A DNA stretch of 64,000 nt from Calcarisporiella thermophila CBS 279.70 (lineage: Eukaryota > Fungi > Calcarisporiellomycota): contig NW_027192199.1 of the NCBI RefSeq assembly GCF_041956535.1, positions 696,068 to 760,067 on the forward strand, read 5' to 3'. The notes under the pieces are model-generated. The model did no database searches, had not been told where the DNA came from, and was given only the letters and a program-made list of their open reading frames with translations. A program made the position numbers and the translations under genes. This document shows, piece by piece, positions 611-53,868 of this stretch; position 1 is the first letter of the stretch, and the number at the start of each line of letters is the position of its first letter.

Positions 611-1702
611 ATGTCCGACATACCCTCCTCCCAAAAACTCGAAATAGCCTCGCGTTTTCTTTTGGAGAGTCCTCCAGGAGAAGTGAATGATGTGTTTAAT
701 GGTATCTTTTCTGTTCATCCGATCACTTGATCGCACTGTCTTCATAACCATTACACACATGGTTTATTTTTTGGAAGAGAGTCATCCTGATAAGAATACG
801 AGACTAAAATTTGTAATATTATTATTCAGATATACGCGTATTAGTGAACGATGACGATTTGCTTCAGGAGGGGATTGTGCCGGCGCTGGGAGAGCATAAC
901 ACGGACCAGCTTGTCACAGCACGCGTACCGGATCAGGAGTATGAGGTAGGATTCGTCCTCTGTTTTCACACCTAGGTATCCAAGCGGGATATGTTAATAC
1001 GGAAGAACTTGGTTATTTGAATCAGGTCATCATTACGAAGCATGGGCAGATTGAGGGGGATAGATTTATTGACCCTCGATCGAAGAAGAGCTTCCGGTTC
1101 GACCATTTGCGCCAGGTAGCATCTGAAGTAGAGGAGTGGACGCCCGAGGAATCTACTGAACCACTACGGTATCTTCAACTTTTATGGTATTGCATTCACG
1201 TTACTTAGCTGATTGCCATACTAGGGCTGCGGTTGAAGAGGCTGTGGACGCATATCTCTCCGACCACTATCCTAATGGAGTCTCTTCGGTTTTCGCGCGA
1301 GACGGGAATATCACGGTGGCTATCGTAGACAATAAATACAACCCCACCAACTATTGGAATGGGCGTTGGCGGTCAGTATGGACACTAAATGCTGGAGATT
1401 TGCGTGGATCGATGCATGTGAATGTCCACTACTATGAGGATGGAAACGTGCAACTCACCACGACCAACAGCAAGGAGGCCAACTTGAACTTGTCCTCGGA
1501 TCCAAAAACGGCAGCAAAAACGATTGTGACCGAGATCACTCGTCTTGAATCGGCATTCCAAGGCGCTCTCATTCGCTGCTATTCTGAACTGGCCGAGGAC
1601 ACATTCAAGTCCCTTCGGCGCACGTTACCCGTCACACGTAATAAACTTGATTGGCATAAGATCCTGAACTACAGGATTGGGGAAGAGATCGGGAAGCAAT
1701 GA
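611..1702 (+). CDS. CAP1: F-actin capping protein alpha subunit (4 exons)
   Basis: Spliced translation MSDIPSSQKLEIASRFLLESPPGEVNDVFND-IRVLV...NYWNGRWRSVW...VHYYEDGNVQL...FKSLRRTLPVTRNKLDW; GT-AG introns restore the frame. Confidence 0.95.
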
Positions 1703-2098
1703 GTTGTCTCACGTTTGTATTTTGCCTTTCTTATTTGTGTTTGCTTGTTTGAAATTTGGGCCTTCTTATGAACTCGGAAGCGGAATAATAATAAACGCAT
1801 CTTAACTATTTGTGGGTGAATGAATGAGTGCGTGAGTGAGTGTGTGCCCCCTATGTATATTTATAGCGTATAGAGTATATATATTTTTAAATGTACGAGA
1901 TTTAGGCAAATTAAGTATAAATGTGTGAGAAAGAAAGTAAATATAATAGAAGACGGTAAGGCGGCTATGACTCGAAAATACAAAACCCATCGACCATAGC
2001 ATGAAAAAACCCGGGTGGAGAATATAAACAACACATCAAACCATTCACACCCCGAATATCAGATCCCATACATACAGAGTTGGTGGCTCTCGACACCT

Positions 2099-3058
2099 TT
2101 ACACCGTGAGCCGGTCTTTACCGTGGGGGCCGCTCTTCTGTGCGTCCGAATGTGACTGGAACTCAAGGATGTTATTGGGTGGGATATTGAGGGTCTCCTT
2201 AAGCTGCCGGCTAAAAATCAAAAACAGAGGCCAGCCAGAAATGAAAAAGTGAGATATTGCTACGCAACCTGATCCCTCAGGTAGCGTTTACATACCCAAT
2301 TTTTTCCGTCACCTCTCGGTTGTTAGATGTCCGTGTCCACAGGGATATCCGATAGAAGATTTTGCGCACTGAAACAACCGCCCCGCAAATTTCATCGTCT
2401 GCATCGAAGGCCTCGCCAATACACGCCAGCACCTATATGGACCATCAGAGTCAGGAACTGAACCAAGATACTCGAAAAAACCAAATGGTATTTACAGTGT
2501 AAAGCCAGTAGTTGTTGATCTCTTCTCCAGTTCTGTTTCTTGGGAACTGAATGGACCATTTGCCTCCCTTTTCATTCGCAGCATCCTCCCACATAGGTTT
2601 GATGTCTTTCTTGAACAGGTGGTAATTCGAGCCGATTCCGATCTCGCTTGCTTTTGCAACATTGTTGTATACACTACAAGAATTCCGAGAGGTTAAATCA
2701 GAAATGTCGGCGAATGGAAAAGGAAACAATTATAGAGATAGGCAGAGAATACGCACCACCAAAAATCCTCCACTGTGCTGAAAGTGATCAACTCTCTCAG
2801 ATTTTGCGACCACGATGCGGTGCTTGCCTTCTTTCCAGGGTTGTCGAACCAGAGTGTCCACGAATTCTGTAGCCTATACATGAATACGAATCACATGGTT
2901 AACTCATGAAATCTGGCAACCCTTCGTCAGAGGCCGTGGGCAAAGGGGTTTATTTACTTGTGCTTAGCATTAAATCTCTTGGGATCATCAAACACCGTCA
3001 CATATTCATTGGTGTTAGCCGGAGGCTCGGTTACATTTAATGGCTCTTGGACAGACAT
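2099..3058 (-). CDS. TIF45: Eukaryotic translation initiation factor 4E
   Basis: LQNSWTLWFD, TVEDFW, YHLFKKDIKPMWEDAANEKGGKW and YWLY motifs with the conserved Trp residues; multi-exon. Confidence 0.93.
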
Positions 3059-3607
3059 TATGTAGTAGAAATGGATAAGAAAAGAGAGTAAACACGAGGG
3101 ATAATGGATCTAGTTGCTTCACGGAGTTTATCTAGATGAAGACCAATTTCGTTGGGAATTATCGAGAACCCTGAGATAGAACAAAAAAAACAAGTTGTGT
3201 ATGCGTACGAAGCTATCTCGGGAATCGAGATAAAAATAGCGGAACTCGGATAACCGATGGATAGCCCCATGGAGAAGCATGCTCAACGCCACACCTAGGC
3301 AAACACCTATACGCCTATAACGGGCCCTCTACACCGTTTTGAACCTTGTCGCTTTTTAATTCTTCTGCCCTCCATTAACGCCCGTTGTTCCCTCCATTGT
3401 GTTTTTCGGCATCCAAGGCAATTCCATAGCACTTAGTATAAAGCTATAATAGGTAAGTGTTTGCTCTTATCCGTAGTGCATATTCAGCGGTCGGTTTTCT
3501 GAAATGGACGCTCCCTTGGGTGAATATTATCACTCTACATAGAAACCTCCCCCGGACACTTTTTCTTTTTATCGCAACCCATTCTAGCAACAGTACATGC
3601 GCTTGTA

Positions 3608-6600
3608 ATGGCAGAAACCTCTACGAATATCCCAGACTCCACCACGCCTGTTTATCAGTTTGATCCCGATGCATCTCCCGATGAAAAAGCGCGTCAAATA
3701 GACCAGGAGAAGCCTAAAGAGGTTCCGGACCGCGAAGCGCTTCGGAGGGCAGCCAAAGTCGATGTACAGAGCTCCCTTGACGGACAAACCGAAAAGCCGG
3801 CTTCGGGGGCTGAGTTGGATGGTAAGCATGATAACATGGCGCCATCGGATCTAGCTATGCCGGCGGCTTTTCCCACTGGGGGAAACAAGGAAATTCCGGA
3901 ATGGTTAGAGCGCCTGGACATACAACCGCCGAATAGCACCAGGGAGGCGCTGCAGGAGAATAAATCGCAAGACCTGGTGGAAGAGCTGTTAGGAGATGCC
4001 TATTACGGTCAAATATGGTTCAATATCGGGGCGATTATAGGAGCGATCATAGTCACCTATCTTTTGAGCATCCTTGGTGCGGGCGTGATGTTGTGCTTGA
4101 TTTTTGGCGCGTTGTTTGGTATGCAGATAAATAATTTTGCAGAGGTTTTCATCTATGCTCGAGTTTCTTATCGCTAACCACTACGAATGCACCCCTACCC
4201 AGCCATCTACTACTCAACGTCAATCAAATACACACGAATGAACGTGCGTGAAGCGATTGCTCGCGATCTGGCAAAACAGCGTCTTGACACGGATGACGAG
4301 TCTGCGGGATGGATTAATAATTTCCTGGAGCGATTTTGGGTCGTGTTTGAACCGGAGCTGTGCGCGCAAGTTGTCGCCCAGGTGGATGCGGTGCTCGCCA
4401 ACATGAAGCCAGCATTCATTGAAGAACTGCGTATCACCACCTTTACACTGGGGAACAAAGCCCCCCGCGTGGAAGCGGTGAAGACTTTCCAACGCACGGA
4501 TTCCGACATTGTCGCCATGGATTGGCTCGTTTGTTTTATTCCAAATGATTTGCAAGATATCCCTGCCACGGAAGCCGCAGAAAAAGTAAATCCCAAGATC
4601 ATCCTGACCGCCACCGTACCCCTTGGCAAATTCAAGCTCAATATCCCTGTGGTGATGCAAGATTTTGCCTTCCGTAGTAGAATGCGCATTAAGCTCAAGC
4701 TTATGAACGCATTCCCGCACATCAAGACGGTGGATGTCAGCTTTTTGACTCGGCCTGAGCTGGACTATGTGATGAAACCGTTTGGAGGCGAAAACAGTCT
4801 ATTTGATGTGAATTACGTACGTCTACAGTAATTTGGGAAGGTTTTTTTTTATTGTGCATGCTAACTTGATTGTTTGCTCCCCCCTCCCCTCCCCCTTTAA
4901 GATTCCCGGACTTTCTGCCTTTGTTGACAGCCAAGTGCATGAAATCCTTGGACCGCTGTTTTATGCGCCCAACGTCTATTCTCTGGATCTTGATGCAATA
5001 ATGAATCCCGATATGCCCATCGACAGCGCTCGTGGTGTGCTTCAGATTATGGTGCATAGTGCGAACGTCAAAAACAAGGAGTTGATTGGCAAGTCGGATC
5101 CGTACGTGAAGTTGTCATTGAGTGGGAAAGAACTGTCTCGAACCTCGGTCAAGGAAGACACGTGGGTTTTTGTCTTTCAACCTTTTGCGCTCGCGACTAA
5201 CCCTCTGAACCTCTTGCTTGTTTTGCAGATCGAATCCTCAGTGGAATGAGACCAAGTTCCTCCTGATCAATAACATCAATAGTGTGCTTTCCTTTGATAT
5301 CATGGATTGCAACTTCAAGATGAAAGACAAACTCATGGGCACTGCCAACTTTGATATGAAGGTGTTGGAGGAAGATCCCACCAAGGATGACCTGATGCTG
5401 GAGTTGAAGCATGGGAGCAAGCGTGTGGGCGAATTGAAGGTCGACATGATCTACCACCCGGTGTTCATCCCCAAGAAACTAGAGGACGGTTCGATGGAGG
5501 AGGCCCCCAAATCAAGTAAGTTCCCTTCATTGTGGGCATTGGTGTGCGGATCCCAATTGATCCATGAACCTTGTTAATTTTATCTAGAAATTGGGGTGCT
5601 TCGACTCACCATTCACCAGGCGGCTGAGCTAAAGGGGAAAGGCAAGCGTAATGCTTATGCGATCTTTAAACTCAATGGGGTGGAGCAGCATCGCACCAAA
5701 ATTTTCAAAAAATCGAATGCCCCGGTGTGGGAGCAATCGTTCGAGGTCTTCGTCGTGGATCACGCCCGGGCTAACCTGCAAATTGAAGTTATGGATAATG
5801 TGATGGGCCGCGATAATACGATCGGCAATGTCACCATCACGCTGAAGGAGCTGTTGGCGACTTTGGAAACAGGCCAAGACTGGTTCCCGCTCACCGGTGG
5901 CGACGGGAAATTGCGGCTAGGGGGCACATGGCGCCCAGTGCTGATGGATTCCATCATGGGCCTGGGCCACGGATTCGCAGGGCCGCCGATTGGGGTGGTG
6001 AAGATCAAGTGCATCGAGGCCCGGGACCTTAAGAATGTGGAGGCTGTCACGGGCGGCAAATCGGATCCCTATGTCCGCGTGCTGAGTGGCGTGCAGATGC
6101 GAGGCCGAACCGACTACATCCCCGACGATTTGAATCCGGTATGGAACGAATCTCTCTATGTACCCATCCACAGTGCTCGCGAAGACCTGCGCCTCGAGGC
6201 CATGGACTACCAGAAGTTGACCAAGCATCGTAGTCTTGGCGTGACCACACTTGAGGTGAAGGACTTGATTGAGTTTGAGGAAACGGCCGAGGGCACCCTT
6301 TACAAGGCCGGAAAAGTCATCGACACCTGGCTCAAACTGGGTAGCTTGGATCGCAAGTCGTTTAAGGGCGAGCTGCATATCGAGGCCTCATTTTACCCTA
6401 CAGCCGAAGTACCGGATGAGGAAGCCGCACAAGCAGAAGCCACGGCGACAACCACTGCGGCTGGGGAAGGAGAAAAGCGGTCGGAAGGGGAGGGAGAGGA
6501 AGAGAAGAAGGCGGACGAGGAGAAGAGGCCCGAGAATGGGGACAAATTGGCTCAGGGTGAAGCGGCAAATCCGAAGGACGGGCACATTGAACCCGCTTCG

Positions 6601-45256: not shown

Positions 45257-47889
45257 ATGACACAATTGATGCGTAGCCGCTCCCACATAACCTCCCGAAA
45301 TGTCGAGCTCGTTCTTTCCACCGACAATCTCTCTGGAAATTTGCCACCACTACGCTCCCCACTATTCTCCCTCTTCCAGACCTGCCGTGCATTACTAGAG
45401 CTTCTTCGCCGAGTGCCCAGCTTTGAGCCATTTATTGCCGCTGCGCCAATGTCTCCCGACCCCGTACAGACTCTTTGGCATATCTGCCGCGAGGGGCATC
45501 CCCTCATTCATCTGCTCAACACATGGCGCCCGCATCACGCTATGGACATTTCTGCACATCTTACCACCCGGCGGGAAAAAAACCAAAAAATATGTGTGTA
45601 CTATTTTCTGAGGGCACTGCGAGACTCCGCAGCTATACCAGAGGAGGAGCTCTTTAGGATTTCGGACGTCTTCTCGGACGACACTAGTGGATTTGTGAAG
45701 GTAAAAAATGCAATGATATGCGAACTCTCTTGGCCGAATGGTAACTGCAACTCTATTTCGACACATTGCGATATCTATTTAGGTAACAAGGGTAATATCA
45801 TCGCTTCTAAACTTAATGGAAGCTGATGGGCTGCTGCTAAAAAATGAAGCCGATGCCGTCTCAGTGAACAGCTCACAGCTGCACTGCGATACCCGGTCAA
45901 TGGCCATTGCCGAGTTTGTGGAAACGGAGCGGAAGTATGTCAACGACATGGAGTTCCTACAAGTAAACTTGATAGTCCCTCTCCGCCTAAAATCTCTTCC
46001 TCCTAGTTATTCACCCTGCCTCCATTCATTAGAATTATATGAATCTGCTCCAAGAAAATAGAATCGTCTCGGCGGACACAATACATAGCATCTTTGGAAA
46101 TCTGAACAAGCTGCTGGACTTTCAGCGTCGTTTTCTGGTCGCTTTGGAGACCAATGCAGAGCTTCCCACTCTTGAGCAGCGTTTCGGGCAAATCTTCATT
46201 CAACATAAAGACAACTTCCAAATATACGCGCCATTCTGCACCAATATCGGCGACGCGTGCGAAATCGTCCAAAAAGAGCTCGAAGCGCTCGGTAAGCTCT
46301 CCGGGGTGCTGGAGCCGAGGCAGATGTTGCCCGCTCTCCTAGTCCGGCCCGTGCAACGACTTGCACTTTATTCGATCATAATGGAGAATTTGGTCAAAAA
46401 CACCGATCGAGATCATCCTTTTTACGAGGAGCAGATCGAGGGACTTGGGGTTATTCGTCAAGTACTCGATGACATCAACGCAGAGAAGCGCCGCCTCGAA
46501 AACGCCGAACACTTGCGTCAGCTCCAAGAAAATAAAGTTTTCGCCTATACCACTAGAAATATGGGCGAGCTTCTCTTAACCGATACCTTTTGTATTCGAC
46601 TTGATGGGAGCATGAATAGAATGATGAGGCTCTGCTTATTTCGCCCTGGGGTCGTATTCATAAAAGAAAGTAAGGAGAGGGCAGGTTCGAAAGGGAAGAG
46701 AAGTGGGAAAGAATCGTTAGGCGCCACCCTTGCAAGACGGTGGACAAGCATAAGGCTAAAGGGAATTGTGGAAATAGGGGCCATTGAAAGCCTTTGCTGT
46801 AAAGGAGAATCAGGTGATTAAGCTTATTATTATCCTAACTTATCGCTGAGATGTCTTAAGGTTACGGTTGATTTAGGTGCTTATGAAATTCACGTATCCT
46901 ACAACAGCGGGCGCGACGCGTTTATTCTATGTAATATTATGAACGAGGAAAAGCTGCTTCTTTGGAAAAACACGATCTCCAAGCTAATAGAGGAGAGGAA
47001 AAAAGAGCAGTCTTCGCACAAGTCCGTCTCCATACAGGAGCTTATGTCCTCGCCCATAAACCCGCATTGCGGAGATGAGGATACCCAATCATTCATCAGT
47101 CGAGACGACGGGGAAGGGTGTGGGGAGGAAGAGGACGATCTATTTTTCGATGAAGAGGACAGGAACAGGGGGTCGGATGCGAAGCACGAATATCCCAACC
47201 TCTCCATGCCCCGACTTCCTCTACGGGACACGTATGCTTCCTCATCACGTATGTCTCGTATCCATCGTAGATCCTCGGAATCAGCATACCCATTGCATGT
47301 AGACTCCATGCATTCTATTTCACCCTCCTTAACCTCCACTGGTTCACCCGCCAACGGCACGAAGTCTGGATTCCTTACTGTGCTACGGGCGCGCTCCAAA
47401 AGCAGCCCTATTCCACAGCATCTTCCACGAATGACTCCTGCGTTATCTGAGCTTCAATTGGCCTTATCAGCCACTCCCCTGATCTCGACATGGAAAACCG
47501 GCTCCACGCACAGCATTCCAGCATCGGAATTCACAATTGCCCAGTCCTCTCCATCGACTTGGCACACTCGAATTCGCATCCGTCTTAACTATGGTGCTGA
47601 TGTTTATCAGCTCACTGTCCCTTTCGATGTATCCCTCTCGGATCTTCTTAATCGTCTTCGCACCAAAATTTATTTATGTGCCGAATTGCCCTTGGAGGAA
47701 GATAGGAAGCTTGTAGTTAGATATCGTGGCGAGAAAGGAGAGCTAATTAACTTAACAACAGATGAAGACGTAAAGAACGCGATTGACATGCATATCATGG
47801 AACCGAATGGAAGCACTGGCAAGCGCCGATCAACCGAGGAGGGGATACCGGCCGTGGTCCCCCTGGTATTGTTTGCAAGTTTGGAGTAG
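45257..47889 (+). CDS. Cdc24/Scd1-like Rho GEF (CH-DH-PH-PB1)
   Basis: CH motif DPVQTLW..CREGHPL..LLN...FRISDVFSDDTSGFVKV; DH motifs EFVETERKYVNDME and LLVRPVQRLALY; C-terminal PB1. Confidence 0.88.
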
Positions 47890-48155
47890 TATTCTTTCAT
47901 ATCATGGTGACTCGCACTTCCTTTTGTTTTTGGCACTTTTTTATTTAAATCGTGTTGCATGAATTATACCTTCGAACAAGCGTGTGTATCCCTATTGTCA
48001 TTCTGTAGATATCACTACTTCAATATGACTTCTCATTCATTATTCTAATTTTCTCAAAGCTTCGAAAAAAGAAAATGCAGTCACACCGAGTGGCAAAAGC
48101 AATATATCTAACATCCACTTTTGTTTTTCGCTCCTCTACAGTTTGGGTAAACATC

Positions 48156-51100
48156 ATGCCGTTGCTAGTCCGCAGTTTTCTCTATTTACGCCGGAATGCT
48201 ATCCCCATTTTACATCACGCCAAAAATTTGCGAGCTCCGTACTCGCGTTTCACTGTAGCACGTTTTTCGCGTCCTAGCACAGCATCCTTACCACTCTATC
48301 CATTGACTAGAGTCTCCCTTCCAACTTCAGTGAAACTCTTACGTAGCCAAGTGCGCCTGTACAATGGAAATGGAATGCCCGGAGGATTTCAGCTGAATCC
48401 TAGCCCTCCCAAGAAAGGCGAATCGCTGCAACAGTTTGGTATTGATCTGACCGATCTCGCATCGAAGGGAAAACTGGATCCAGTCATTGGGCGAGAGGAA
48501 GGTAAAAGAGCTGATATACAAGCTTTTGAATCCAATATCTAATGTTTACGAGTACATTCTTTTTACCATGCAGAAATTCGAAGAGCTATACAAGGTAATT
48601 TTACAAATTGTGCCTTGGAATAACCTAAAATATCTTGACACTTTTCGTTTTATCTATCTTTTACTCTTTAGTGTAAGAATCACATTTACTGCCTCTATGA
48701 GTGTCTCATATGATAATATGTTTATTGTGCATAAGATTATCGAGGAGAACGAAGAACAACCCAGTGCTTATTGGAGAAGCAGGGTATGGGCTTTAAAAAA
48801 ATACTTGTTAGTTAGGAATATGCTCGGCCAATTAATTCTTACCCAAAAGGGTTGGCAAAACTGCAATCATAGAAGGGCTGGCACAGCGAATTGTGAATGG
48901 GGAGGTGCCGGAGTCTATCAAGAATAAAAAAGTGATTTCCTTGGATCTTGGTGCACTCGTCGCTGGTGCCAAATTTCGGTAGGAATGTTGCCACAGCGTT
49001 GTCGCCCAACACTTTGTATATATGTCACGTCCTCATTATATTGTTTAGGGGGGAGTTTGAAGATAGACTTAAAGCGGTGCTGCGAGATGTCCAGGATGCC
49101 GAAGGAAGTGTTGTTTTGTTCATAGATGAGATTCACATGTTACTAGGTAACTAAATTACCTATAACCAAACTTTTGAGTTGACTAATTGTTGGTATAGGT
49201 CTTGGAAAGGCGGAGGGAGCCATGGATGCTGGTAACTTGCTTAAACCTGCATTAGCTCGAGGTCTACGTTGCTGTGGTGCCACCACAATTGATGAGTACA
49301 GAAAGGTAAATCGATTTTTATTTTACCAGGTCACCTCAGCGCTTCAATAACTTTTTTATATCTTAACAGTATATTGAAAAAGATCCAGCTTTGGCTCGGC
49401 GATTTCAATCGGTGCTAGTTAGCGAGCCTACGGTAATTTAGGGCACTGGTTAGTATGTCTTGTATAAACTGGCTTAACCTATAATTCTCTAGGTTGAGGA
49501 TACCATCTCAATTTTGAGAGGACTAAAAGAACGATATGAAGTCCATCATGGTGTGCAAATCGAAGACCGCGCTCTGGTGGTCGCAGCGCAGTATGCGCAT
49601 CGATATTTGGACCGTTTCCTTCCTGATAAAGTGTGTAAATGGTGTAGGATGAGTTCTCTCTTGAGAATTAATGTTCTCCGCTTTTTCGATGCCACCAGGC
49701 CATCGATCTTGTAGATGAAGCTTGCTCTAAGTTGCGCCTGCAACAAGAATCCAAACCGGAAGTGATCGAGAACTTGGATAGGGCTATTATCACTATGCAG
49801 ATTGAGCTGGAAAGTTTGAAAAAAGTGCTCTTTGTTTTCTTAAATAGTACCCTTTTCTTTGCGGATATTAACCTAATGTAATCAAGGAAACGGATCTTTT
49901 ATCAAGGGATCGGCGTGAAAAACTGTTGAAGGATTTGGAGGAAAAAAAGGCAGAGTGCGATCGTTTGACAAGTATCTGGCTTGAAGAAAGGTAGGAAAGT
50001 TTTGCCATTCCCATCTTACTGTATAGATTGCTTATAGCCTCTACTCCAATTTCTTCTAGAAAAAAGCTGGATGAGATTAAGCAAATCAAAACACAATTGG
50101 AACAAGCTAGAGTTGATTTAGAGAATGGTTAGGGACATTCTAACTTGTTCATTTTTTTTTTTCCGCTCCGAAGCATTGTCATTTTACTGACTCGGTTGTT
50201 TGAAAAATATTAGCGCAGCGACAAGGCAATTTTACCAGAGCTAGCGAACTTCGTTACGGGATAATTCCTTCACTTGAAAAGAAGCTTCCAAAAGAAAGGT
50301 TAATAGAATTTCTATAAAATATCCTTCATTATGTCTAATTCGGCTCGAATATAGTGGTGAGGAGGCAAGTGAGGGCCAGGAATCGCTTCTTCACGAACGT
50401 GTTACCTCCGATGATATCGCACGCGTCATTGCGGCTAAGACGGGCATTCCAGTGCAGAATCTACTTCGTGGGGAACGCGAAAAACTGCTCCACATGGAAG
50501 AGGCCCTTTCACAGCAGGTGATCGGCCAGGATGAGGCGATCCGTTCAGTATGCGACGCAGTTCGTCTTTCTCGTGCAGGGCTCACTGACAGTCGACGACC
50601 AATCGCATCTTTCATGTTTTTGGGCGGAACTGGGACAGGTATTCATGAGAGTTTTCAATTTTTTGGGCTTGGGATCAATTTCAATTCATCTTCATTAATA
50701 TTCACCCTACCGAAAGGAAAAACGGAATTGTCTAAGGCGATTGCACGCTTTTTATTTAACTCGGAATCAGCCATTATTCGAGTCGATATGTCCGAGTACA
50801 TGGAAAAGTTTAGCGTTAGCAGATTGATTGGTGCACCTCCAGGCTATGTGAGTGATAGCTTAAGCTATTCTTGGACCGATTTAGTACTAACTCGTTATCC
50901 TTATTCTTATTAGATAGGATTTGAAGAGGGTATACTCTACGAACAGAATCCTTTTGACGCTGTGTTGATCTTGATGGATTAATGATAAAATGAATATAAT
51001 TTTATAGGCGGCGAGCTTACCGAGGCGGTCCGTAGATCGCCATACTCCGTTATCTTGTTTGATGAATACGAAAAAGCACACAAAGATGGTATTTACCTAT

Positions 51101-51997
51101 TTTTTTTTTTTTTTCAAAAACCTCGTTTTGCTCCAATCCTATTTATGTTTCACTCTGATATAGTGAGCAATCTCCTTCTTCAAATCCTTGACGATGGCTT
51201 TTGCACTGACTCAAAGGGGCGTAAAGTGGATTTCAGAAACACTATCATAGTGCGTTAATTTTTTTTTTTTTTACTATTTCTAATCATAATCGCATAACTT
51301 TTCATTTGCAGATTATGACCTCTAACTTGGGTGCAGACCTATTGACGATGGAGACCGGTGAAATGATAAGTGAGCGAACCAAAAAAGCCGTATTCGATGT
51401 TGTTCGGCGAACTTTCCCGCCAGAATTTATCAACCGCATCGACGAAATGGTAACAAGCTTTTATTTTTTTTTTATTTAAAAAAAACTACAAGAGTTAGCG
51501 TACATGACGATTAATGTCTAAATAACCATGACCTCTTCTTATTTTATAGATCGTCTTCAATCGTCTCTCCCACCAGGTTTTGCGTCAAATAGTGGACGTA
51601 CGACTCAAAGAAGTTCAAGAGCGCGTTGCTGATCGTCGAATCACCATCGATTTGGATGAGGATGCCAGAGCCTGGTTGTCGGAAAAAGGCTACGATCCCA
51701 TCTATGGTTCGTATAATTTAATATCTTCTCTTCTGGTTATTTCTAACTTGCTTCATCCATTCTCACTGCGTATGCCACGTCTTGTTAGGTGCGCGTCCGC
51801 TCAATCGATTGATCCAGAAAAAGCTGCTCAATCCGCTTGCGCGTTTGTTGATTGATGGGGGTGTGCGTGCTGGTGAAATAGTGCAAGTCAGAACTAAGAA
51901 TGACGATTTAGTAGTCAAGCGCAACCATGAGCCTGGAGAGTATGGTGGTGACACAAAGCCTGCACCACTAGTGGAGGATAAAGAAGGGGATATATAG
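48156..51997 (+). CDS. HSP78: Mitochondrial ClpB disaggregase Hsp78 (about 21 exons)
   Basis: Arg/Ser-rich presequence and no Clp N-domain; [57 protein letters not shown]. Confidence 0.94.
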
Positions 51998-52194
51998 AGG
52001 AGGAATGAAAATACAGCCCAATTGATCATGGAGTGCTGCATGTTTTCTTTATTATTTCTGGGAAAAATACAAGATAGGAAAAATCGGCAGCTGATTGTAC
52101 CAATATTAATACAACTCTTTGCTTCTAATAATGACAAGTAGTCAAAAAAAAAAAAGTAAGGCCACAAAAAGTATCATACGGGGGTATCCACAAT

Positions 52195-53868
52195 TTAATC
52201 ACTGTCGCTCCATGTGTCCTTCTGAGCCTAACAAAAGAATGGGGTTAAAATTGGATGAGAAGGTCCAATTCAATGTAAGCGCTTGAATAGCAAACCTCTT
52301 GGATCTTTTTCTCTCTTTCATCCTCGGGGAAGAAGGGTGCCCATACCAAAACCTCGTTGTCGGTTCCGCCAGTATAGAGCTCCAGTTTCCCCGGTCTCCA
52401 GGCGATGGAGGTCACACGACCGTATGACCCTCGTAAACGTTTCACAAGTCTACCATCATAAAGTTCAAAAACAAGAATCTGCCTATCATCCGACGGCTGA
52501 AACACAAGAGGACGACGGCATGCCTCGGGAGGTGAGATACACGGAAGCAGTACATGAGGGTATTTGTTTCGGATGTGTGGACCATAGTTGACGAGGGTAT
52601 TACGAGCCCCGCTAGAAAGATCCCACAGACGCAGCTTCTCGTCTAGACCAAGCGAAAGGAGGTGATAGCCGTCAGGAGTAAACGCTAGCCCATTCACAAT
52701 TCCATTGTGGGCAGTGTTTGTGGGAGAGAGGGGTTCTTGACCTGAGAAAAGCAGAACCCACGTAGAGTGGATCAATATACGCGTATTGAGAATAGACATA
52801 CAATATAAACTATGTAAGGTTGGATTAAGCACCTGTATTGTGTTGATCCAGGGATATTAGGCAGGGGGAGGCGCGGCGAATATCCCAGAATCTTATTGTG
52901 CGGTCGCTAGCTCCGGATGCTAATAAATATTCATCTGTGGGAGACCAACGCACAGTCATTACCGTTCCATGATGACCTATGTTTACGATGATAAGTATAA
53001 AACAATTACAGCAAGTAAAAAGTGAAAACTTACCTGGGAGTGTATGAGTAAAGGCACCTGTTCGTAAATCACACAGTCTAATTCTGGGATCAGAGGTCGC
53101 GCCTTTCAAAATAGCGGTAGAGCAATAAATACATGTCAGCTACCATGTAGTCGACTCAAAAAAGTTCTATAGCTGGACGATGCTTACTTGCTACCAGGCA
53201 GTGCTCAGCTATCGGCGAAATTGCGTGAGAGTAGACTTTGGCTTCTAGATCAAATATACACGCTTCCTAAATTAAAAGCTTTCAAGTTTCAAGTGGGATC
53301 GTCTGATGGGTAGAAAATATACACGACAACACCTTCATTAGATTAGTATCCCATATTTTTATTGTATGATCAAAGGAGGATGTGATAAATAATCCTGTGT
53401 CGAATGGGTACCATGACACTCCAGACACACCATAACGATGACCATAATTTCTAATAACAAGTAATTTAGAGTCAATCTAGTGCGCCAAATGTAGAACCTA
53501 GACAAGATCAATTCTTTGCTTACCTAGGGATTTTAGATATTGCAGATATACGTATACGATTCTGATTCAGCGGTTCTTCTAGATCGTATAAGCAAATAGA
53601 AGAATCAGCTCCTCCAGATAAAAGGCTAATAATTAGAAGAAGTGTGATCAATAACTCGTTTTCTCCTGGTGAATGTCAGAATAGAGCATTCATACTATCT
53701 TCCTTCGACATTTTCAATTTCTAAACAGCTAACCGTACCATGGTGTTCCCTCGCTACGTCTTTATTTGGACACAATTCAATAGCTAAAGTGCGCCTTGTT
53801 AACTCAGCATTCTTCAATATATTTGGATGATCGGTGCCTAGCTCTCTTGCCAGCAGAAAATGGTTCAT
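52195..53868 (-). CDS. ERCC8: CSA/ERCC8/Rad28 WD40 DNA excision repair protein
   Basis: EGRYLLSGGAD, WYPFDTGLFITSSFD, IRLCDLRTGAFTHTL, WDIRRA, AHNGIVNGL, NTLVNYG; ends DTWSDSD. Confidence 0.92.

Follow-up and report, generated by a model that had tools for sequence, protein, structure and literature searches.

How is a conserved valine codon assembled when the two exons that flank it come out one base short on being joined? The question is posed by the gene for Hsp78, the mitochondrial ClpB-type disaggregase, which occupies 48156-51997 on the forward strand of the window analyzed here, a 64,000-nucleotide (64-kb) stretch of the Calcarisporiella thermophila genome. Its exon 2 (21 nt, 48574-48594) supplies with its final G the first base of the Val codon, and exon 4 (48 nt, 48736-48783) supplies with its initial A the third, this A being followed by a Leu codon and a conserved stretch that runs into Walker A. 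The original prediction, whose coordinates and sequences within 48574-48760 agreed with the DNA on re-reading, held that a direct join of exon 2 to position 48736 shifts the frame and that the missing second base comes from an exon consisting of nothing but the T at 48672. The direct join is indeed one base short, and the T very probably constitutes a genuine, constitutive one-nucleotide exon, with the Val codon split by two short U2-type introns (A and B) and its GTA drawn from three exons; the 811-aa reading frame, the splice signals, and a layout conserved in six other genomes all bear out this predicted assembly.

The Hsp78 gene of Calcarisporiella thermophila

The exons of the gene were pieced together by coordinates from positions 48000-53000 of the window; the joined model was compared locally, and exon sequences or related stored sequences served as queries in database searches. 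With the T at 48672 included, the 21 exons yield an 811-aa open frame without a stop, and all 20 introns of the model so built are of the GT-AG type. The top NCBIfam match of the protein is TIGR03346 (ClpB; 1098 bits, profile positions 149-852 of 853), and by this profile it possesses the two AAA+ modules and the ClpB-type middle domain. Its score lies below the 1232 bits that NCBIfam sets as the equivalog cut-off for bacterial ClpB, since the protein lacks the ClpB N-domain (profile positions 1-148), an absence that is characteristic of the Hsp78 architecture. Compared with bacterial ClpB the model shows 59% identity, and with named fungal Hsp78 proteins 65-73%; its N-terminal ~80 residues are basic and show little conservation. 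From its sequence, we file the predicted protein under the eukaryotic mitochondrial Hsp78 subtype and not under bacterial ClpB.

When exon 14 was used as the query, this gene emerged as the only Hsp78-type copy in the genome, the other match being the Hsp104 gene. A search of the representative library with the same exon returned mostly bacterial ClpB fragments, and a metagenome scan with exon 1 returned bacterial ClpB only, via one conserved peptide. Hsp78 is very intron-dense (20 introns per 2.4 kb of coding sequence) and carries, in addition to the 21-nt exon 2, a 16-nt exon at 50914-50929. In contrast, its cytosolic paralogue Hsp104, for which there are solved structures (PDB 6d00 and 6azy), is encoded by one unbroken ORF (L002:679-3228, minus strand, on contig 6 of the genome, G000), with an open frame of 886 aa, 849 of which remain when counted from the first start codon. 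The neighboring genes were identified by eye from their translations: upstream lies the 316-aa terminal exon of a gene for a PB1-domain protein (46939-47889, plus strand), which stops 267 bp before the Hsp78 start, and downstream lie convergent ORF fragments (52245-53428, minus strand) that look to belong to a WD-repeat gene.

A single base between two complete introns

The 141-nt gap between exons 2 and 4 is divided by an AG (48670-48671), the T (48672), and a GTAAGA (48673-48678) into intervals of 77 and 63 nt, as had been predicted. Intron A (48595-48671, phase 1, 77 nt) runs from GTAATT to TTTAG, and intron B (48673-48735, phase 2, 63 nt) from GTAAGA to ATAAG. Each contains a branch-like motif, namely TTGAC at 33 nt before the end of A and CTCAT at 27 nt before the end of B; intron 5 likewise has this CTCAT variant as its sole candidate. 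A and B are thus two complete short introns, one base apart in the same Val codon, and both are typical in length for a gene whose remaining 18 introns measure 52-100 nt (mean 70.3, sd 11.2), against 141 nt for the gap left unsplit.

Splice sites were scored with a matrix trained on those 18 Hsp78 introns, the lowest acceptor of the training set reaching 3.3. The donor (9.9) and the acceptor (11.0, the AG at 48670/71) of intron A both stand at the top of the range of the gene. For the donor that follows the T the score is as low as 4.8, owing to the T at position -1 in a matrix trained on the donors of Hsp78 itself; its GTAAGA is the sole GTAAG donor among the 20 of the gene. The composite motif YYYAGTGTAAG, expected 0.12 times on both strands of the 64-kb window, occurs in it once, and that copy is the one in the Hsp78 gap. 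If the T is omitted, translation shifts frame and, 23 codons further along, runs into a stop at 48870-48872, so the T is needed for the 811-aa protein. Two other micro-exon readings of the gap were tried and rejected: an exon from 48672 to about 48702 encounters an immediate in-frame stop, and the other candidate would leave an intron of 9 nt.

Conservation of the predicted one-base exon across fungi

Genomic Hsp78 loci of relatives were anchored by tblastn with the flanking peptides. In six further genomes of Mucoromycota the same layout recurs, namely codon base 1, an intron, AG-T-GTAAG, an intron, and codon base 3, with intron lengths, against 77 + 63 nt in C. thermophila, of 84 + 72 nt in Rhizophagus irregularis (L087), 66 + 56 nt in Phycomyces blakesleeanus (L088), 64 + 73 nt in Umbelopsis vinacea (L089), 96 + 69 nt in Paraglomus brasilianum (L093), 86 + 74 nt in Gigaspora rosea (L094), and 52 + 66 nt in Lichtheimia corymbifera (L096, with the T at 1451). 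The original prediction had named conservation of this motif and of both introns among related Hsp78 genes as a check, and both are found in all six. Outside AG-T-GTAAG the intron sequences of these relatives are unalignable and unconserved.

Other fungi retain one of the two introns or neither. Linnemannia elongata (L091) has the phase-1 intron alone at the Val codon (105 nt), and Rhizopus stolonifer (L090; 48 nt) and the chytrid Spizellomyces (L092; 66 nt) have the phase-2 intron alone. The Val codon is free of introns in the fungal contigs L083, a Logan contig whose ORF encodes an Hsp78 68% identical to our model, and L084; a word search with exon 1 gave three weak matches, two of which led to fungal contigs without an intron at this codon. 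Since the phase-1 and the phase-2 intron each occur alone in some species, each is independently attested, and at the loci compared the one-base exon is present wherever both occur. It would thus have arisen because two separately attested introns adjoin. We regard this comparative evidence as decisive for the predicted exon; the last ancestor shared by Mucoromycotina and Glomeromycotina would already have had the arrangement. The missing intron B of Mortierellomycotina and the missing intron A of Rhizopus and Spizellomyces may reflect either loss or the ancestral state. Spizellomyces has, in addition, another intron two codons from where Calcarisporiella has its intron 1 (within L092:756-934).

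A spliced Hsp78 contig from Lichtheimia

A 3315-nt Logan contig (L095, from SRR6965957) contains an unbroken 801-aa ORF whose product shares 95.8% identity with L. corymbifera Hsp78. It aligns with the L. corymbifera gene (L096) in 24 colinear blocks, and as none of the 23 genomic gaps between these is retained, the contig derives from spliced RNA. The two blocks that flank the gap in question pair contig positions 283-328 with genomic positions 1353-1398, and 330-377 with 1518-1565. The sole unaligned base between them, 329, is a T; it forms the middle of a GTG codon, and no shift of either junction accounts for it. At the DNA level, identity between this contig and the L. corymbifera genome is 88%; the contig thus represents a congener, whose own gene structure is unseen and may lack intron A as in Rhizopus. 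A word search with a Rhizophagus fragment for transcript fragments of the same species found none closer than about 80%. For C. thermophila itself, we infer the splicing of the T from the gene and its relatives.

The same L. corymbifera gene has a second double-length gap of 141 nt (L096:2310-2450), which coincides with 13 bases of the contig (L095:765-777) left unaligned by blastn; this gap probably hides a 13-nt micro-exon.

Deposited models and alternative readings of the gap

A query derived from L083 returned 120 fungal Hsp78 proteins, among them P0212, the deposited C. thermophila protein (VTP21DRAFT_11670), which has all 811 residues of our model plus 11 extra just after the Val. A single 107-nt intron at 48595-48701, ending on a weak in-frame AG at 48700-48701 and leaving 48702-48735 to be read as coding, reproduces this entry exactly. 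The original prediction was right that the stretch 48730-48750 holds no AG in the appropriate phase; the in-frame AG at 48700/01, on which the deposited annotation relies, had been overlooked. This intron is canonical GT-AG and keeps the frame; the resulting Hsp78 has 822 aa, its 11 additional residues standing just ahead of the Walker A strand. Of the alternatives it is the best placed. Nevertheless, its acceptor has no strict branch motif within 50 nt and scores -2.3, less than that of any of the 18 training introns, while the AG at 48670/71 reaches 11.0; the intron itself would exceed every other in the gene. The insert falls in a gap relative to the E. coli ClpB chains, a gap that matched lengths also give in other solved Hsp100 proteins, and it is found in no relative. 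Among the 96 fungal models in which both flanking motifs were matched, 79 have the standard spacing at this segment, and the inserts in others vary in length and sequence, as expected of intron read-through. As the deposited model also leaves the conserved AG-T-GTAAG unexplained, we consider it improbable.

The C. thermophila entry is one of many. Numerous Mucoromycotina and Glomeromycotina models are faulty exactly at the Val codon: some have Gly in place of Val, others carry unrelated inserts, 3 to 22 residues long, and there are also a deletion and a protein starting just past the codon. For R. irregularis alone, the codon has been resolved wrongly in three different ways, one of them a gene cut in two: several of its assemblies split Hsp78 exactly at the one-base exon (P0275-P0277 with P0274/P0162), as does the L. 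corymbifera annotation (L096:854-1455 and 1501-4920). In the Spizellomyces model P0257 (L092:756-934) the 66-nt phase-2 intron is read through as 22 extra residues. Counting the 120 fungal models and further members of their 90% clusters, roughly thirty public Hsp78 entries are wrong at this codon.

The Gly-for-Val models amount to a second reading of the gap, in which a non-canonical GT-AA (equivalently TA-AG) intron, with the join at 48595/48736 or 48594/48735, replaces Val by Gly. It too gives an open 811-aa frame, and Gly is carried by nine deposited orthologous models, including those of Rhizophagus, Syncephalastrum, Absidia, and the older one of Phycomyces. However, it would require non-canonical sites although every other intron of Hsp78 is GT-AG, and the position is Val or Ile in every normally modeled relative and in solved ClpB. 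In Phycomyces the older protein (P0180) has Gly, whereas the newer one (P0227) has Val, and at the P0180 locus of one Phycomyces assembly (L088) the T is the only route to Val. The Gly models would then be the product of an aligner forcing a one-base mismatch, and there is very little likelihood that the Gly reading is correct.

One-base assembly errors do happen, and an indel at 48594 or 48736, which the original prediction had named as a potential refutation, would turn the gap into one ordinary 141-nt intron. Such an intron would lie more than 6 sd above the Hsp78 mean, and neither junction has a homopolymer; the same one-base shortfall with an internal AG-T-GTAAG recurs in seven independently assembled genomes, and this shared layout rules out an assembly indel for all practical purposes. 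There is next to no chance that Hsp78 is instead a recently frameshifted pseudogene, as the stop at 48870-48872 after a direct join might suggest, since the more than 2 kb of coding sequence downstream remains intact over 17 further exons with canonical splice sites, the gene is the sole Hsp78-type copy in the genome, and its structure is kept in other species.

Proposed splicing of the one-base exon

Under the one-base-exon model, introns A and B, each with its own donor, branch-like motif, and acceptor, would presumably be recognized across the intron. Such intron definition, in a fungus with introns of 50-100 nt, would make exon-spanning recognition needless. As the acceptor of intron A and the donor of intron B overlap within about 10 nt, sequential removal appears most likely, and either order of removal would keep the signals of the other intron whole. 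Downstream of the T, the donor is invariably a strong GTAAG, which probably makes up for the missing U1/U5 contacts with the upstream exon. A message from which the T has been skipped would presumably be cleared by NMD; in the original prediction, such skipping would serve as an off switch. The inclusion of the T might also act as a regulated valve, in which an obligatory splice order controls inclusion and conditional skipping, in this thermophilic fungus for example upon temperature shifts, yields a frameshifted NMD message and tunes Hsp78 output; we view this as an unlikely, albeit conceivable, extension of the model.

Significance and comparison with known systems

One-base exons are a known kind of structure, with precedents in APC11, CYP621A, and Coprinopsis, and the Hsp78 example stands out by how deep in the phylogeny it reaches, by an origin that can still be traced, and by how widely the site is misannotated. 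It adds a deeply conserved case to the few documented one-nucleotide exons, lies in a housekeeping chaperone, and occurs alike in arbuscular mycorrhizal fungi, Mucorales, Umbelopsis, and Calcarisporiella. How it came about is directly visible, in that its two adjacent introns each still stand alone in other lineages, and the resulting natural series of genes with both introns, with A or B alone, and with none is suited to testing how the spliceosome handles an exon of nearly no length. Given how many models are wrong at the Val codon, the site can be used as a benchmark for microexon-aware annotation. Among the papers listed by a full-text literature search, none tied micro-exons to Calcarisporiella or Mucoromycota.

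Two classes of compound intron call for comparison. At the ratchet points of Drosophila and vertebrates, a zero-length exon that leaves no base behind subdivides very long introns, the first splice regenerating a donor. As there, an acceptor directly adjoins a strong GTAAG donor in Hsp78, and the interval would be removed in two successive reactions; unlike there, the introns are short and the mRNA must keep one base to close the frame. In fungal stwintrons, the introns are nested, one interrupting the donor, branch, or acceptor signal of the other. Introns A and B of Hsp78, unlike these, are adjacent, each with complete GT, branch-like, and AG signals.

The C. thermophila genome offers a second one-nucleotide exon in a CCDC25/JLP2-type gene (L098:1336-1503; about 526096-526263 on contig 20 of G000), where a Trp codon is assembled from TG, a 102-nt intron, AG-G-GTAAGT (with the exonic G at L098:1438), a 65-nt intron, and a conserved exon; Hsp78 is therefore not the only gene of this fungus with such an exon. 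The long-read annotation of Coprinopsis cinerea, in the passage available to us, lists thirteen 1-nt exons in 13 genes, the omission of which leads to premature stops (PMC12230235). With these cases, the description of one-base exons as very rare in the original prediction needs tempering. Coprinopsis is an intron-rich basidiomycete, and that passage provides a catalogue without an analysis of conservation or origin (PMC12230235).

The Arabidopsis gene APC11 has a constitutive one-base exon whose splicing was shown by reporter assays (PMC4674806). As in Hsp78, one base lies between two canonical introns and was at first misannotated; APC11 is, however, a plant gene studied with such assays, whereas the Hsp78 exon is predicted here from the comparison of sequences. 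Another one-nucleotide exon is documented in the Fusarium P450 genes CYP621A (PMC12940212), which are likewise fungal: the base flanked by AG and GT forms the middle of a codon that is conserved, the gap if left unsplit would have roughly double the length of a normal intron, and the structure is kept in orthologues and has been overlooked by annotation pipelines. CYP621A is, however, a rarely expressed accessory enzyme of a single genus (PMC12940212), whereas Hsp78 is a housekeeping mitochondrial chaperone in which the predicted exon spans Mucoromycotina and Glomeromycotina, and, unlike in CYP621A, each of its flanking introns is also found alone in other lineages.
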